Below are positions 8,435 through 41,541 of a stretch of 64,000 nt of DNA, piece after piece. This DNA is from Guillardia theta CCMP2712 (lineage: Eukaryota; Protista; Cryptophyta), in contig NW_005434662.1 of NCBI RefSeq assembly GCF_000315625.1, positions 705,479 through 769,478 of the forward strand. Direction: 5' to 3'. The stretch's first letter is position 1. Every line of letters begins with the position of its first letter. The notes under the pieces were generated by a model. It saw only the letters and a list, made by a program, of their open reading frames with translations, did not search any database and had not been told where the DNA came from. The translations under genes and the position numbers were made by a program.

Positions 8435-10085
8435 TTACATGCTCTTTGCTGTTAGCCAACCCAAGAGTTTCTCATTGAACAACTGCGGCACTTCATCATG
8501 AGGGCAGTGCCCAGCCTTCAAGCCAATGTACTCGGCAGAGGGCATGAGCTGTAGTGTTCTGTCTGCCCTTGACTTGGTTATCCATGGATCGTTCTCGCCC
8601 CATAGAAGCAAAGTAGGAATCTTCCTCGCCTCCACGAAATTCGAGAGAGTGTTGACCGTCACATATCTCTTGCCTCCCCTTCCTCCGATGGTCGTCTGGA
8701 AGAAGACTTCAAAGGCATTGGGTTGGAGAGCTGGCCTCTTGATCAGATCAACGAGATCGTCATCGATCCTCGACTTGTCATCAGTGTAGACCAGCGCCAG
8801 TGTGGATGCTATCCTTGCCTCTCTCGTCAGGAGGAATCCTCCAAAGGAGATCATGCTGAGCCACGAGTCAAGTTAGGCCTCGCAGAATCAGTTCTCTCAC
8901 CGCTTGATCAGCTCTTGCACACGATCCACCAGCGTGTATGGAGGCGCAGGAGCATCCATCTCTGAGAGGATGCTGTCCTGCGGGAGACCCGCGTACGGCT
9001 CGACATTTCCATCTTCTGCCAGGGGGCCTGCGGAGTTCACCAGCACAAGGCCCCCGATGCCTTCAGCCGACCCGAGCCCTTGGAAGGCGAGATCAGCACA
9101 CCGCACGGTCACTGGCGCCTGCATTACCTGCTGCCAACATGGCGGAATATCCTCCCAGAGAGTTTCCAGCCAAGATGACTTGCTTGCTGAAGGAAGCAGG
9201 AAGGATCACTTCCTTGATGAAATCGCAGATCTGCGCAGCCCAGACGTGCCCCCCCCACACATTGAACTGCAGTCAAGGTGAGCATGGCTACAGCTGACGC
9301 GTCTGTGCTTGCAAGCATGAAACAGGGAACTCACCCCGGTAGGAACGTCAGGCTGCTCAGAGAAGCCAAACCCGAGAAGGTCGATGGCATACACCGGCCT
9401 GTCGGCCGCGAGCTGCTCCACGTTGTCTCTCCAGTGCTGATGACCAACAGCTCGTCACTTCACACATATCCAAGTCATTCACATCACTTCGATCGATGCT
9501 CCAAAGCCATGGATGAGCAGGATGGGGTTCTTCTTTCCCTCCGGGTTGACGCTCGCATACCTGGCCTTGCGATCACACCAACGATCTTCCGGAGCTTTAA
9601 CAAATATGACCTGACCCTCATTGTCTTCCATTGCCAGAACTGGCCTTCTCTCCACTACACCAAACCAAGAACAAGGTTCAGATGCAAGGAAATGCTGAGA
9701 GCCAGCATGATCGCACCTTTTGCACTGGCTGCGTTGTCGTGACTGTTGTGGCGCCCTCAACCGACGTCTCTGCAGGTTTTGCAGACATCTGACCAATGAG
9801 GGACGAGATTCTTCCACTTCTCAGAAGTTTTCGCACTTCTTCATCACAACTTCTTCCAAAGCTTCGGCAGTGTCTGCCATGGATGGTAGGTGCAACGCGT
9901 GCTTTGGTAGTGAGGGGAGAAGGCCTGACGGTGCTGCTGCGAAGCTTGCTCATCTCAGGAAGCTTCGATGAAGCGGAGGAAGAGAGCGGAGAAGCAGAGA
10001 AGGAAGTTGCAGATGTGGATGGACCGAGCATGAAGGCCATGGAGGCCGGCGGAAGGCTGAGAAGCAGCACAAGCGCCGCCGCCAT
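8435..10085 (-). CDS. Plastid-targeted alpha/beta hydrolase, pheophytinase/chlorophyll-dephytylase-like
   Basis: Signal peptide ending ...SMA|F; motifs LLIHGFGAS, YAIDLLGFGFS, GNSLGG (nucleophile elbow), LLWGENDPW, GHCPHDEVP. Confidence 0.85.
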
Positions 10086-16900: not shown

Positions 16901-19750
16901 TTAACCAGCTTTCTTGACGTTCTTCTTAATGTACAAAAAGTATCGATCATGCGCAGTTGCGTGCCGATTGATTCCCTTCTGCCATAGACGATCGAAGTAG
17001 GAGGAGGCCTTGATGCTGTGCCCGCATTCGGGTCCTGGCGAGCCCTCATGGATCACAAAGCCGTCTATGCAGCTGTTCTGTCGGATATTTTTGTTCTGCA
17101 TCTTGATGGAGGTGAATGCTGCCTTCGACCCCTCGCTTACTTTTCCAAGGATTCTGCCGAGCAGCTTTGCATACCACAGGTTGTCTGTCACCACTGTGAT
17201 CGTTCCGTCGTGTGCAAGGATGCGATACATGTCACGAAAGAAGTCAACGGTGAGGAGATGCTGCCCCTCGGAGTCTTCGCCACCAGTCTGTTGAGGAGGC
17301 TCAGGGTGATTGACAAAAATCTGATTGACTGAAGACTCCGAGATCAAGCACGGAAGAATCTGCTCGTTCAATCAGATCGTTCAGAGAGAGGCAGTTGCCT
17401 GACTCACCTGTGTGGCATCACCACCGAGCACCGCCAGGTTCTGAACATCATGGAAAATCATTCTGGTAAAGATCTGATGAACTCGATCGATCCTTAGCTC
17501 CAGGGCCATCCAGTTCGCCGCGTCTTGATCTGCCTTGGCCTGAGCAATGGCCCATTCACCAGCCCCGGAGCAAATTTCAAGCTTGACAGGCAGAGTGTTT
17601 CCGAATAATTCCCGAAAGACCAGAAAGCCCTTGGGGCTCAGCATTTTTCGTATCTTTGTCGTGTAGTCGCCCAAGAATTTTGGAAAGAACTTCTCAATCA
17701 GCTTTTCTTTCGCTTCCTCAGGGTCAGATGCTCCCTTTGCAGCAATGATATCCTGTTTCAAAACCTGATCGAGTCCGAAGCTCTGCCGCCAGTATCAGTA
17801 TAATGAAACAGCTCATCACACCCTGACCTTCCGGAGACCACTGGTTATCTGCTTGACGACGATTTTCTGTGGATCTCCAACGTTCTTAGTTTCAGTCTTA
17901 TCGACATTCTTGGTTTCAGTCTTCTCGACCTTCTTAGTTTCAGTCTTCTCGACCTTCTTAGTTTCAGTCTTCTCGACCTTCTTAGTTTCAGTCTTCTCAT
18001 CAGTTTTCATTGCTTCAGGGCTGCCATTCTTCTGATTTTCCCGAATCCACTTCGTGTACTCGTTGTCGTGGTCCCGAAATGTGATCAAGCGCAGAAGAAA
18101 ATCGCTGTAAGCCTTCAAAGGGCCATTGGACAGAGTGTTGGAGTCGTCCTCCTCCAGAGCCTGCCAAATCACATATAAGGTGTAGGACCAACGAGCGAAT
18201 GCAAACACCTTGACGCTGGTGACAAACTCTTCGATCGACTTTAACTCCCTCCGAATCTCTTCACACTTGTGCTTTTCAAAGATCGATGCCTGTGTTTGGC
18301 AGCACAAGAATAAGCTTCGAACCAGAGGAGCAGAGTAACAAGCTACCGCATGTTGACGACTCTTATCTCGAACTCGCCAGCCTTGTTTACCTCCTTCGAT
18401 CTTACGATGACCGGCCCCCTCATCTTCGTCTTCATCGTCTCCTTCATTTCTCTCTCCGATCTCCTTCTCCATGTGCTGAATCGCATTTCTCGTGGCTTTG
18501 CCATACAGCTTCCACTTTGCCCAGTCTTTCAGAAGAGCTGCTGACCTCGCCAGGGCAATGTTCACAATCGGACTGTTCACAGCTTGAGCCAGGTAAGAAC
18601 TAGAAGCTTCTTCGCTATCCTTCTTGGTCTTCTTCTGCAGCATCCTGAAGAGTTTGGTGGCCTCGCCGAGCAGGAGTCCCTGACACCGCAGAGATATGAT
18701 GTACTCATATGTGGACAGATCCGGCTCAAGACTCCACTCTCCCTGCATGCGTTCGAAGAGCGAATCTGCCTCGGAGGACGCCCCGACTAGCAAGCAGCCG
18801 CGAAGAAGGGTGTTGATGGTCCGAATGTTTGGCAGCACCGGAGGTTTCCTACTCAGCATGGCCCGCAGCACATCCAGAGCGCCCAGTACATCTCCAGCTT
18901 TGCACTTCCCGTTGATGAGTGTTGTGTACGCGACAACACACGGAGCAAAACCTGCGCTGATCATTTGCTTCATCACCTTAGATGCTCCAATCGCATCGCC
19001 GCATCGGACGTAGGCGTTGATCGCAATGGAATAGGTGTGCGTGTTCGCCAGATCCTCGTCTACCGCCTGCTGGAGCAGCTTCTTCGCCTCTGCCAGCTCT
19101 TTCCTGTTTGCATGCTGAGAGATCTGGTCGTTCATAGACCTTGTCCTCTCAGGATCACGAGTCTTGTCGCTCCTCAACTTGGGCTTGCTCTCAGCCTTCT
19201 TTTCACTGAACTTTCTCCTCTTCCCTTTCTCCTGCTTCCCTTCCCATTTTCTTTTTCCAGTTTTGGCTTGCTGATCAACTGATCCCTCACCGTCGCCAGA
19301 TCCTTTCTTTTTCTTGAATTCTTGGTCTCCTGTCTTTCTGTGTTTGTTTGTGCTCGCATCTGCGCTGTTGTCCTCGCGCTTCTTTTTTCCATCTTCTGCT
19401 CTTCTGGGCAAACCTTCCCTGTCCTTACTATGCCTGCGATCCTGCCTCGAGCCTCCATTTCCTCCTTGCACACCTCCGCCTCTCGCGCCCCTCGCACCTC
19501 GCCCACCTCTTCCGCCTCTCCCGCCTCCTCTCTCACTTGCTTCGACACTCCTTCCTTCTCCCCCACCCTTTCCGTTGCCTACACCTCGTCCCCTTCCTCC
19601 CCGTCCCCCTGGACTGCCTCCTCGACCTTCTTGCCCTCCTCTCACTTCTCCTCGTCCTCCTCGTCCTCCTCGTCCTCCTCCGCCTCTTCCCCCTCCGCCC
19701 CCTCCGCCCCCTCCTCCTCGTCCTCGATCTGGTCGCTTCGCCCCCCGCAT
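16901..19750 (-). CDS. PPR protein with C-terminal tRNA (guanine-N7) methyltransferase (TrmB-like) domain and N-terminal RGG-rich region (PPR-TGM type)
   Basis: PPR motifs (TYSIAINAYVRCGD, AYTTLINGKCKAGD, TINTLLRGC, TYEYIISLRC); TrmB-like LEICSGAGEW, WMALELR, IFVNHPEPP, VVTDNLWYA. Confidence 0.88.
17878..17998 (-). repeat. 24-bp coding tandem repeat (KTETKKVE, about 5 units)
   Basis: Repeated ttcttagtttcagtcttctcgacc inside the PPR-TrmB ORF. Confidence 0.9.
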
Positions 19751-19871
19751 GTGCAGTGGGATCCCTGACTATTATGACTATTATATATAACAAATTTCGA
19801 ATATATATAACGAATGTAACAGACTGCTCAGAATCAGCGTAACGTTCAGCGACAGGCCGTAACGGGTGCTC

Positions 19872-21948
19872 ATGGCGGCGTGCAGGGGGCGGGGAGGGGG
19901 CGCATGTGCGACGCTCTTCCTCTCCTGCTGCCTCCTCCTCTCGAGGATAGGCAGGGGCCATGGAGGTTCAACTCTTGCCGTATGCAGTGCTGAGGGGCTG
20001 GGGTGCGGAGTACCGCAAAGAGTCGATGGGGTTTCCTCTCCCTGGGGAGGGGCCAAGACTGGGAGGAGCGAAGTCGGCGGCTTGAGGCTGCGGGGAGGAT
20101 CGAGCTGGTCGAGCTGGGGCAGCTCTCTAACATCTGATAAGAAGGGATACAACCCTGAGAACGACCCAGAGGTGAATGCGAACCATCCGGATCCGAGGCT
20201 GAGCTTCTGCAGGCGGAACACATTCCCAACGACGGGATAACGTGCATGAAGTTCTCGCCCAAGGCGATGGTATGTAGAGCTGCACGTTACCGAGCTCCTC
20301 TGATGGCTGATGCCAGGCACCTAACAACTTTTTGGCCGTGACGACGTGGGAAGGGGAGGTTTGCAAGCTTTCCGTGTTACTGCTCGCGTTCTGATGATGT
20401 TGAGTAGTTGCGATGCTACGAGGTCGATGGATCAACAGGCAAGACAAAGCCCGTTGGCATGCAGAAGCATGAGAAGCCGGCAATGTGCTGCGCGTGGAAG
20501 GTTTGTATTGTATGTCAGGGCTGCGAAGTTCTCACGTGTGGAAAGTTGGATGGCGGTGGCGTATTATCAGGAGGAGCTGACGGCAAGGGAATGCTGTGGG
20601 ACATTCGAGCTGGTACTTGGACTCAGGTGCACCAGATGATGTCTTTGCCATGAAACAAGGTAAATCCTTAGGTTGTGAGCATGACTTTGCTACAGATCGC
20701 CATGCACGATGCTCCCATCTCTGGGATCTTTCACTCTGAATTGCCATCCCCTTGTTACATTACGGGATCTTGGGATCGTACTCTGAAATTCTGGGATGCA
20801 AGGTTCATTCTCAGAATATTTTAATGTTTCAAAAATGTCTAGTTTGACTGATCTCTGTAGAAATCCCTCAGCTTCTCCAATTGGCGTTCTACAAGTTCCA
20901 GACAGAGTTTATGTATGTGCAGGACGTCTGGACTAACTGGGACTGAAAAATACTGCAGGCGATGGATGTCGTGGATCATGTTATGATAGTTGCAACTGCT
21001 GAAAGACATGTTCTTGTATACGACTTACGGTGAGTTGATCAGTGTTGGTTCCTGTGCAGGTTTAACAACATTTTAGCAACCCCGCCCAGCCATTTCGTCA
21101 AAAGTTCTCGCCTTTGAAATACCAAACCCGATGTGTGGCCATATTCCCTGACAAGGTGTGTAACCCTCACATCGGTTAGCTGAAATGCTCTGACTTCCTG
21201 TTTCCTGCAAACAGACCGGGTTCTGTGTCGGGAGCATTGAGGGGCGGGTAGGCGTTGAGCATATCAGCGATGCTGACCTTCCCAAGAACTTCGCATTCAA
21301 GTGTCATCGGTGACTTGCACAGTCCTGCTTTGTCAATGTCCTGAAAGCTTCCTTGACAAGGCAAAACACAAATGCCAAGGACCCGGAGCTATATGCTGTG
21401 AACACTATTGCATTCCATCCTGTGAATCCCTCGTACTTTTCAAGGCTCTCTCTCACCCTCTGCGTCAGTTGGGAACATTCGCCACAGCGGGCGGGGATGG
21501 ATCTTTCAATTTTTGGGACAAGGTACGAGAGGTTCATCGTAAACGTAGCAGCTGTAAAGATGTCCTTCAGGATGCAAAGCACAGGCTGAAAGCATTCCAG
21601 AGGGCAGATCAGGTGAAGTGCCTCCGTTGTTTTGATGTGGTGGGCTTGTGACGAATGCGCTGCTTAGCCAATAACATCCTCACATTTCAACCATGACGGA
21701 TCACTCTTTGCATACTCCGTGTGCTACGATTGGAGTATGTGGAGTATGGTTGCTCTGGAGTTATCTTATTGCGAACTTTCAGGCAAGGGAGTTGATGAAT
21801 TCTTGAAGCTGAATGCCGAGCAGAGGAAAGGGAGAATCATGATACACCTCGTGAAACAAGTATCTTGACCATCGATCTTTGCAAATTTCTCAATAGCTTC
21901 CTGCAGGAATGCCAGCCGAAAAAAGACGTGAACACCAAACGCTGGTGA
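19872..21948 (+). CDS. RAE1: Rae1/Gle2 WD40 mRNA export factor with N-terminal signal-like leader ending in LRLRGG
   Basis: Spliced motifs [101 protein letters not shown]; the FAFKCHR/WDKDA/YDWSKG pattern favours Rae1 over Bub3. Confidence 0.9.
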
Positions 21949-22049
21949 TAAACAGATGCAATGACCGATCTTCGAGCTGTAAAGAATGTAATGTTGAATA
22001 GCCTGCTGTGAGGAAATATATAATATCTTTGTTGATGCCAAAGAGCATA

Positions 22050-22880
22050 TATTTACAATCCTTTTCATCTTGGATTACTCTCAACTTCAGGACTTGTAAT
22101 CTTCTCGTTCAATCATCCACGACGGCGAAGAACTCCGAGCACTTCGCGTATTGTCTTGCTCGAGCAATCTGTAGATGCAAGTTCAATGACTCGCATCTTT
22201 TCACAACAACAAACACGCACCTCGAAGTCTTCTCCTCCAACTCATCGGCGAGGGACAGTCCCATGAGCAACTGCAGCTGCTGAAGCTGGTCGCTAGAGTC
22301 TGGAGCATCTACCAAGGATATGGGAGCAATGTTCGCCTTCACTGTCGAGTTACTGACAACCTTCTGCGTGCAAAGTCAGGCTGGAAAGAACTTCTCGCTA
22401 TCCTTACCATCGGGTTGTCGCTGGGTTTTGTAACGACTTCATTCGTCGTGGTTGTAGCGTTTTGCTTCAAGACGTTCTTAACAAAGATATCTTTGGCCAC
22501 GGGCAAAACCTGGAGACATTCTTCAGAGCAAAATCACCATTATGAGGTCCCCCACCTGACTCTGCACAGCCTTTATGATACCCTTGGGCGCTGATTTCAT
22601 GAAGCGGGAAAGACTCTCCTTCACTTCATCCTTGTCAAGCCCCTTTTTCTCTTCCGGGATCCAGGAGCATCTCAATCGTGTCAGATGCATGCTCCTCGTC
22701 CTACCGGCATGATGAGACCTGGTCGATCTCTCAGTCCTTGGGCTTCCTGCAAAGACAGGCGCACCTCGAGGAACCAGGAAGCTGCACTCCGACTTGAAAT
22801 GAAGCACACGAATCCAACAGAGACAACCCGACGATGAGCAACGAGATGAAGATGGTATTGGTTTCACGTACAGTGAACAT
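22050..22880 (-). CDS. Hypothetical protein with a possible bipartite plastid leader (3' end approximate)
   Basis: MFTVRETNTIFISLLIVGLSLLDSCAS|F followed by short exons (WIPEEKKGLDKDEVKESLSRFMK...); exon joins not fully resolved. Confidence 0.45.
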
Positions 22881-39914: not shown

Positions 39915-41541
39915 ATGCGGATCCTGTTAGCGGCGGCTATGGCGGCGGTGGCGGCGCACGAGGGAAGCGCGTTCATGCTGTCTCCTTCATCCTCGTCCTT
40001 CATCAAGGTCTTAGCGCAGAAGATGCCTGCTCTTCCTCTCCTTCATCCTCCTTTGCTCCCCTTCCCTTGCCGAATGCGGGTTTGCCCCCTCCAGGCGCAC
40101 GTTCACCCTGTCCGCAGGCGCAAGGATCGGTGTCAAGCTTCGCCGGGAGATTCACTGGAGTGACAGCAAGGAAAGCTACGCTGAGAAACAGCCATGCCTG
40201 CTCGGTCAAGGCGTCTCTCCAGGGTCAGGACGTCATGAACAGGTTCGATGCCATCGGCAACTCCGCAATCCAGAAGTTGATGGACGCTCTGCCGCTGCGA
40301 GAGAGTAACCACGTGGAGGTGAGCCGATGTATTCCTCCATGCATGTGAATGCCAACGTGTGACTGTAGGGGCTGGGTGCAAGCAGCTGGATGGAGGGTGG
40401 CTTCTCAGGCTCTGTTCAGGGCTGGACCGCAGAACCGAAAGTTGGATGGTGGGTGCTCGACGCAGTCCTCTCCTCGCGCTCTGACAAACTGCCGTCAGGA
40501 TCTCCAAGTCGAGCATGAAAAGCAGCGACTTCTCCACTGGCTCCTCCAGCCTCGTCGTCCTCATGGGGTCTGCCGCCTCCACTTCCTCCTACGGATGCCT
40601 GCTCTGACCGTTGATCCCCGCAGGCCATCCTATGACACTCCCCACCTGTGGGTGGACCTAACCTTCACACCGCAAGAGATCCTCGTCAACCTCGACTTTC
40701 CTGCAAGGTGCTCTCCCTCCTTCCCTGGGGATCCCAGGGCCAAGTCTCCTGCTCCGACACATGGAGTGGAGGGAAACATGTAACATTTGTCCTCAGGGTC
40801 GACCTGGCGGCAAACAAGGACTACATCGCGGAGTACTACAAGGTAATGGCACGCTGGGTGAGCTTGAGACTGACCAGGAGGGCCCGAAGAGCGCGTCAGG
40901 GTGGTATGACTCTCTGATGAACGATGCTGCCACAACGGCGCTCGCCGGAGGGAAGGGGCTGAACGAGCGAATCCTTGCTTCGCCAGTGAGACAGGCCCGG
41001 ATATCTCTTGGGCTCTGCCTCACCCTGCTGCAGATGTCTCTGTCTCTCTCCATGGCGAAGGATCAGCAGTCTCTGGATTTGATCGAGAGGGCTGTGGACG
41101 AGCAGGTCAGAGGAAGCTCTTGCGCAAACTCGCGACACAGTTGAAGTCGCCGACAGGTTTCCACTTGGTGCTCATGGATCCAGGGAGCCCGTGAGGTCAA
41201 CAGGATGCAGGTGGGTGGGCCCGGGGAGAAGGAGGGGTGGGAGGGGGAGGAGTCTGACTCGTGCCCGACTCAGAGAGGAAGCATGTTCGCGAGAGATACC
41301 CAGATGCAGCGAATGCGCTTCTCTTCACTGGTGCTGAGGGCTCCGCCTACGTTTACACATGATCTGACATGTTAACAGTTCCAAAAGTTCCAGTCCGTCT
41401 TCCCCAAGGATCGCGCCCAGCAGGTCTTTAGCTGCCTTTCAGGCTCGGGTATCCTTACCTCTGCCTTGTCAGCTTGCAGCCGCTATGGTCGGGCCAGGCG
41501 ACGAGCAGTACGTGGGCAGTGCCGGAGACAACTCTGAGTAA
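39915..41541 (+). CDS. Plastid-targeted red chlorophyll catabolite reductase-like protein (ferredoxin-dependent bilin reductase superfamily)
   Basis: Leader MRILLAAAMAAVAAHEGSA|F; PSYDTPHLWVDL...LVNLDFPAR/VDLAANKDYIAEYY, ASP, WCSWI and RD motifs resemble RCCR. Confidence 0.65.

Follow-up and report, generated by a model that had tools for sequence, protein, structure and literature searches.

The removal of leaders from proteins that reside in the periplastid compartment is an unsettled matter in complex-plastid biology, and the Rae1 gene of Guillardia theta at 19872-21948 of the analysed window raises it in a concrete form: why does a Rae1 leader end in LRLRGG, the C-terminus of ubiquitin? 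The window is the whole stretch of 64,000 nucleotides (C12:705479-769478), and genome-wide counts cover 669 contigs with 87,145,349 bases. We found that the Rae1 leader is transcribed, that LRLRGG recurs in leaders across the genome, that it stands at the boundary where homology to known proteins begins, and that it is conserved across species. Judged from these sequence comparisons, LRLRGG is probably the maturation site of periplastid or nucleomorph precursors, cut by a deubiquitinase (DUB)-kind protease specific for the ubiquitin tail. The features of the gene are as follows.

19872-21948, plus strand: coding sequence of Rae1/Gle2, 16 exons, stop at 21946-21948, 439 amino acids (from spliced transcript contigs)
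19872-19943, plus strand: start codon and signal-peptide-like segment, with the n-region MAACRGRGGG and the h-region ACATLFLSCCLLLS (19902-19943) (read from the sequence and its open reading frame)
19944-20081, plus strand: transit-peptide-like linker of 46 amino acids, rich in Gly, Ser and Arg, with one Lys and no Phe (read from the sequence)
20082-20099, plus strand: LRLRGG, identical to the ubiquitin C-terminus, with a proposed cleavage site after GG (in frame with the ATG at 19872)
20100-20171, plus strand: predicted mature N-terminus of Rae1 (SSWSSWG...GYNPENDPE), the remainder of exon 1 (from ortholog alignment)
20213-21948, plus strand: WD40 beta-propeller body, exons 2-16 (transcript model; Pfam and PDB searches with the ortholog P0020)

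Transcript contigs from three independent runs span 19869, 19890 or 19974 to 20169 with no joint, showing that exon 1 is unspliced; because they cover both the leader and LRLRGG, both are present in the mRNA. The joints in the spliced contigs defined 15 introns of 41-69 nt, all of the GT..AG type, and the ATG at 19872 is the sole in-frame ATG before exon 2. The initial annotation had described a signal-like start, a Gly/Ser/Arg-rich linker without Phe and a ubiquitin tail lacking the ubiquitin fold, and had named an mRNA start downstream of the motif as a possible objection. The start and the linker can be read directly from the open reading frame, LRLRGG lies in the frame of the ATG at 19872 within the transcribed first exon, and the transcripts include it. 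Pfam searches with exon 1 found neither ubiquitin nor any other domain, so the leader holds no beta-grasp (ubiquitin) fold. The ubiquitin fold spans roughly 70 residues, and a degenerate ubiquitin domain within the linker was considered and rejected, the linker being too short and giving no Pfam match. The Rae1 leader (L071) also passed the test applied genome-wide, a heuristic that looks for a charge-free hydrophobic window of 10 residues within the first 35 amino acids. After LRLRGG, the protein reads SSWSSWGSSLTSDKKGYNPENDPE as far as the end of exon 1 at 20171. From the composition of the leader (10 Leu, 8 Arg and 21 Gly among 93 residues), the expected chance occurrence of LRLRGG is 4e-4.

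We then counted LRLRGG in the genome with three loose, degenerate patterns. The patterns beginning with CTNCGN, CTNAGR and TTRMGN gave 146, 58 and 80 matches, compared with 60, 50 and 38 for the reversed controls, that is, 284 against 148 in sum. When only CTN and CGN codons were allowed, LRLRGG had 70 matches (reversed control, 24), and with matched codon families the hexapeptides LRLRGA, LRLRAG and GGRLRL had 11, 28 and 15 (reversed controls, 13, 19 and 36). For a census, the first 30 sites of each degenerate pattern were taken, giving 90 loci of 3 kb with 75 exact LRLRGG sites. The results showed that 37 of the 75 (49%) had an in-frame Met and a charge-free hydrophobic window 26-109 amino acids upstream (median, 47), while the same test succeeded at 2.0% of six-frame positions and at 2.2% of hexamers rich in Leu, Arg and Gly (binomial p ~1e-41). 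The difference held when the hydrophobicity thresholds were varied (looser, 53% versus 3.6%; stricter, 35% versus 1.0%), and permuted hexamers of the same sample that did not overlap the motif had a signal-like start in 1 of 16 cases. The enrichment behind signal-like starts that the initial annotation had predicted was therefore borne out, at 49% versus 2% genome-wide.

The LRLRGG of the 37 leaders was encoded by 36 different 18-mers, and pairwise BLAST among the 37 precursors gave no match with E < 1e-3, indicating that the constraint acts on the peptide. For the same two reasons, a DNA repeat or a common leader cassette was ruled out as the source of the recurrence. About 83% of the loose matches are exact, so that the genome would hold roughly 236 exact sites, including at least 8 polyubiquitin repeats; extrapolated from the sample, the genome probably has about 115-125 leader-type genes.

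Some observations were made beside these counts. LRLRGG-coding sites exactly 228 nt apart, as in polyubiquitin arrays, occur at C38:281297-281769, C99:57218-57462 and C191:52039-52511, and on C38 the opposite strand carries a USP-type deubiquitinase gene (274762-277651) some 3.6 kb from the array. L039 (C13:130769) and L040 (C13:133887), tandem paralogs with 3.1 kb between them, both read ...VPAR/LRLRGG/GHHEFTISSDEQHF; one has a signal-like start in the same open reading frame, and the start of the other is probably on a separate exon. Two Phe-type plastid leaders of the same window as Rae1, at 10085 on the minus strand (...ASMA/FMLGPS) and at 39915 on the plus strand (...EGSA/FMLSPS), have a Ser-rich stretch after FML and no LRLRGG-type motif; with two cases, this is only suggestive of an absence of LRLRGG from leaders of the Phe type.

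The position of the motif was analyzed where the downstream protein could be aligned with known proteins (a slash marks the proposed cut). In the eEF1A gene (L011), the first residue past GG aligns with residue 2 (Gly) of solved eEF1A, and therefore the motif stands in for the initiator Met only. The alignment of the Rae1 ortholog P0020 with human RAE1 (3mmy_A, E 1e-94) opens directly after LRLRGG, at human residue 7; the segment after the motif had been likened to a natural Rae1 N-terminus before, and this alignment agrees. An MBF1-like protein (L059), with a weak HTH_3 match in Pfam, reads LRLRGG/SYLSGQ in G. theta and LRLRGG/MSYFQG in a metagenomic ortholog (P0296) of 48% identity with an unrelated leader. 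The expected position at the homology boundary was thus found in eEF1A, the Rae1 ortholog and MBF1. A PDB search with the leader L019 (LRLRGG/MKLF), which has a weak likeness to Trm112 (E 1.2), aligned only junctions between polyubiquitin repeats, and these over the tail only, an illustration of how closely the junction resembles a DUB substrate. Taken together, what follows GG resembles a native N-terminus.

Across the 37 leader-type sites, no residue is conserved after GG. The first residue after it is Met in 4 cases, Gly or Ser in 15 and Pro in none, while Pro follows 3 of the 38 other exact sites. The composition also changes at the motif: the share of acidic residues is 5-6% over the 30 preceding positions and 16% over the 10 that follow, and Lys rises from 2.4% to 6.7%. 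The linkers of the 37 leaders, 11-50 amino acids long, contain 7% Asp and Glu, compared with 15% downstream.

The proteins downstream of the motif include, besides eEF1A, a SAM methyltransferase, a SAP-domain protein, ankyrin repeats, an NAD-dependent epimerase/dehydratase and a RETICULATA-like protein; weak Pfam matches were also found for a CBM20 starch-binding domain and for the HTH_3 of the MBF1-like protein. Pfam results for the short first exons of motif genes were mostly blank, and a search for homologs of the SAM methyltransferase gene (L031) returned the G. theta protein itself only. An open reading frame from one of the sampled loci is 100% identical to GUITHDRAFT_99447 of G. theta CCMP2712. 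Cargo of cytosolic or nuclear type behind a signal peptide would be sensible in a cryptophyte only for the periplastid compartment or the nucleomorph. Two motif-bearing precursors (L012 and L025) are membrane proteins, one RETICULATA-like and one multi-pass with its family unassigned, and the LRLRGG device would therefore extend beyond soluble periplastid proteins.

To follow the motif in Rae1 itself, relatives were first sought with a part of the gene free of stops (exon 4, intron 4, which stays in frame, and exon 5) and afterwards with P0020, the full-length ortholog. The ortholog has a Pfam WD40 match and a far better PDB match to human RAE1 than to Bub3 (E 1e-94 versus 1e-22); together with named matches to RAE1 or mRNA export factor and the public model P0180 ('putative Rae1'), this identifies the gene as Rae1/Gle2. 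Relatives with long N-terminal extensions were found in at least 12 lineages under 90% identity, mostly metagenomic and including one Hanusia phi fragment. All of them have a hydrophobic start, and 11 lineages carry LRLRGG and one AVLRGG, in nearly all cases 17-22 amino acids ahead of the conserved NPxxDPE. In the alignment of the 12 lineages, L71, R72, L73, G75, G76 and S77 are invariant and R74 is 90% conserved; downstream, W79, G80, N94 and P95 are conserved, while the 45-130 residues from the hydrophobic start to the motif are unalignable. Judged by similarity only, the source organisms of these relatives are presumably cryptophytes.

The nearest named relatives outside the leader-bearing clade are from Porphyridium (56% identity to P0020), then Galdieria, Pyropia and Porphyra. 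In the maximum-likelihood tree, the leader-bearing clade has 100/100 support and joins between the red algae and the remainder, a placement that is compatible with a red-algal origin and does not settle it. A second Rae1-like exon match lies at C79:316652-316741 on the minus strand (63% over 30 amino acids, residues 113-142 of Marchantia RAE1) and is a candidate for a host-type, leaderless Rae1. The earlier proposal that this gene is neither the only Rae1 nor that of the host therefore held in part: the leader-bearing clade with red algae as its nearest named relatives and the weak second locus on C79 speak for it, and the red-algal ancestry is left unsettled by the tree. For the initial interpretation as a whole, a nucleomorph-destined Rae1 whose leader is removed at a ubiquitin-like tail, three of the four refutation tests set in advance were run and none refuted it; it is partly supported.

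From these results, we infer the import route, the cleavage itself and the class of the enzyme. Rae1 would be a red-alga-derived, endosymbiont-type protein whose precursor carries a bipartite leader. The signal peptide would carry the precursor into the lumen of the endoplasmic reticulum surrounding the complex plastid, and the transit-peptide-like linker without Phe would cross the periplastid membrane via the ubiquitin-dependent SELMA machinery and retain Rae1 in the periplastid compartment. LRLRGG would mark the end of the leader, where a cysteine protease of the DUB kind would read the bare tail and cut after GG, releasing Rae1 with a near-native N-terminus for function at the nucleomorph. 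The same device probably operates in at least 115 genes of the genome. As a speculation, the cut after GG would also shed ubiquitin added to the leader during SELMA transit.

A protease of the DUB kind that can act on the tail alone, as viral LXGG proteases do, is proposed because all six residues are identical to those of ubiquitin, variants differing in one residue are rare, the junction resembles that of polyubiquitin, Pro does not occur after GG and the compartment has a ubiquitin system (PMC5756292, PMC12412216). A separate peptidase for transit-peptide-like (TPL) sequences, the 'TPL peptidase', has been postulated and not identified (PMC5756292). We see about an even chance that more than 100 cryptophyte periplastid or nucleomorph leaders are removed by a DUB that recognises the bare tail, in other words that the 'TPL peptidase' is a DUB. 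The diatom enzyme ptDUP, the only periplastid DUB proposed so far, has the enzyme class and the compartment proposed here; it differs in its proposed role, which is the removal of ubiquitin from imported proteins and not of leaders, and it is missing in cryptophytes, where an alternative enzyme is expected (PMC12412216, PMC5756292). A nucleomorph-encoded ZUFSP-like putative DUB with no assigned role is conserved in four cryptophytes (PMC6559170). If the proposal is true, one cut matures the protein and discards the ubiquitin attached by SELMA, which could explain the absence of ptDUP in cryptophytes and would connect maturation with the ubiquitin-dependent import step. A conserved ubiquitin tail at the junction predicts the cleaved bond to the residue, names an enzyme class and offers a bait for the enzyme; the motif would then serve as a one-line predictor, telling which proteins make up the periplastid proteome and at exactly which residue their mature forms start.

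The leaders share features with several known systems. Bipartite signals of periplastid proteins in cryptophytes and diatoms combine a signal peptide with a transit-peptide-like part (Gould et al. 2006, as relayed in PMC4494062 and PMC12136025). The leaders described here likewise have a signal-peptide-like segment followed by a Ser/Arg-rich, acid-poor stretch with a non-aromatic first residue, and cargo of cytosolic or nuclear type; as far as these sources relay them, however, the published descriptions specify how the transit-peptide-like part starts and mention no conserved hexapeptide marking its end. In linear ubiquitin fusions (polyubiquitin and ubiquitin-ribosomal protein), an LRLRGG/X junction also frees the downstream protein's own N-terminus, which accords with the lack of Pro after GG here, whereas the Guillardia leaders carry the six-residue tail only, with no upstream beta-grasp fold. 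Viral LXGG sites, such as those of the coronavirus papain-like protease, are likewise ubiquitin-tail-like motifs outside ubiquitin whose cutting enzyme also deubiquitinates; they belong to viral polyproteins, while the Guillardia motif ends a cellular organelle-targeting presequence and its protease is putative. The PEXEL and TEXEL export motifs of apicomplexans, cut by plasmepsin V and ASP5, are also short motifs tens of residues past the signal peptide that are cut during trafficking, as is proposed for Guillardia. Unlike them, where conserved residues remain on the new N-terminus, the Guillardia proteins have nothing conserved after GG, and a PEXEL-like motif was rejected since LRLRGG does not fit the RxLxE/Q/D consensus.

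Several points weigh against a bare-tail-reading DUB and the leader census behind it. DUBs typically bind ubiquitin by its fold, and the leaders have no such fold (linkers of 11-50 amino acids, blank Pfam results). The positions of nuclear Peptidase_C78, USP, UCH-C12 and OTU loci were checked manually against a list of LRLRGG sites (46 sites were outside the list, some of which were added later) and none was adjacent, so no periplastid DUB is tied to the motif. The signal-peptide calls come from a crude hydrophobicity rule, a heuristic rather than a trained predictor, and the census is a sample of 90 loci only. No leader is visible at about half of the exact LRLRGG sites, which may be chance matches, sites with spliced leaders or ubiquitin genes. 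In Toxoplasma PUBL, finally, the RGG before the mature domain is unprocessed and dispensable (PMC5487736). That case resembles ours in belonging to a plastid of the SELMA lineage and in having an RGG between leader and mature domain that was discussed as a DUB site; it differs in being a single protein in which mutation had no effect, whereas the Guillardia motif is recurrent and conserved.

The alternative that survives best keeps LRLRGG as the maturation site and gives the cut to a dedicated presequence peptidase unrelated to DUBs, so that the likeness to ubiquitin would be convergent or incidental. The boundary and recurrence evidence fits such an enzyme equally well, and the two points on DUBs just named, the missing fold that most of them need and the lack of a periplastid DUB beside any listed motif site, are in its favour. 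However, all six residues equal those of ubiquitin and single substitutions are 3-6 times rarer, the LRLRGG/M junction mirrors that between polyubiquitin repeats, and a ubiquitin system is known in the compartment (PMC5756292, PMC12412216), so we regard this alternative as rather unlikely. Less likely still is that LRLRGG is a sorting or retention signal and not a cleavage site, for example a ubiquitin mimic read by the Cdc48-Ufd1-Npl4 complex of SELMA or by an E3. SELMA import is indeed ubiquitin-dependent (PMC5756292, PMC5487736), and the motif is confined to proteins led by a signal-like segment. A recognition element, however, needs no exact position at a native N-terminus, whereas the motif adjoins residue 2 in eEF1A and, in MBF1 and further proteins, the native Met, and the composition switches exactly at GG. 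Moreover, ubiquitin readers bind the hydrophobic patch of the fold and not the tail.

P0180, the publicly available model ('putative Rae1, nuclear pore complex component', 379 amino acids), is 98% identical to the transcript-based model across the common part. It starts at an out-of-frame ATG at 19960 (MEVQLLPYAV...), spliced to ...SLTSDKKGY (19960-20124), and the intron annotated there was seen in none of the transcript contigs; the leader and LRLRGG are therefore absent from it. That this 379-amino-acid annotation is right, the leader untranslated and LRLRGG an accident of a 5' region rich in G/R is very improbable: the longest transcript contig does begin just 3 nt ahead of the ATG at 19872, but the annotated intron lacks transcripts, the orthologs of 12 lineages have both a hydrophobic start and LRLRGG encoded in the Rae1 frame, and chance is opposed by the composition-based expectation of 4e-4 and the genome-wide p of ~1e-41.

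The leader also bears on what is known of this Rae1. An algal-related Rae1 is one of only two nucleomorph-related pore proteins in cryptophyceans (Irwin & Keeling 2019, PMC6411479); no signal peptides were predicted for it there, and the N-termini were suspected to be incomplete. The leader-bearing Rae1 matches this 'algal-related' protein, and the transcript-based model is the source of the N-terminus missing in that study, where the lack of the leader from the public model may explain the absent signal-peptide predictions. The leader supports the view that the nucleomorph does receive one of its two remaining nuclear-pore-associated proteins. More generally, the motif would be a simple and specific marker for periplastid and nucleomorph proteins and would aid the repair of gene models. 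Our literature search, with several key papers and supplements beyond its reach, found none in which the motif is connected with Guillardia, with cryptophytes or with the periplastid compartment, and none describing a ubiquitin tail at the end of such leaders.

The surroundings of the gene contain one further element and two neighbouring genes.

19780-19811, no strand assigned: TATA-like A/T-rich stretch, a likely core promoter (read from the sequence)

This stretch is located between Rae1 and a divergent upstream gene, and the transcript contigs start at least 58 nt downstream of it. The divergent gene (17816-19750, minus strand) has an open reading frame of 644 amino acids, the N-terminus of which is extremely rich in G/R and contains GRGG repeats; a helical repeat region that resembles the PPR type by eye only follows, and the C-terminus has a tandem repeat of KTETKKVE. 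On the other side, at 21950-22300, Rae1 and a convergent gene on the minus strand overlap at their 3' ends, and one transcript contig spans both. Opposite-strand raw reads near the 3' end of Rae1 stop around 22028 with a loose poly(T) end, and at position 22116 a T>C difference was seen in 8 of 28 reads.

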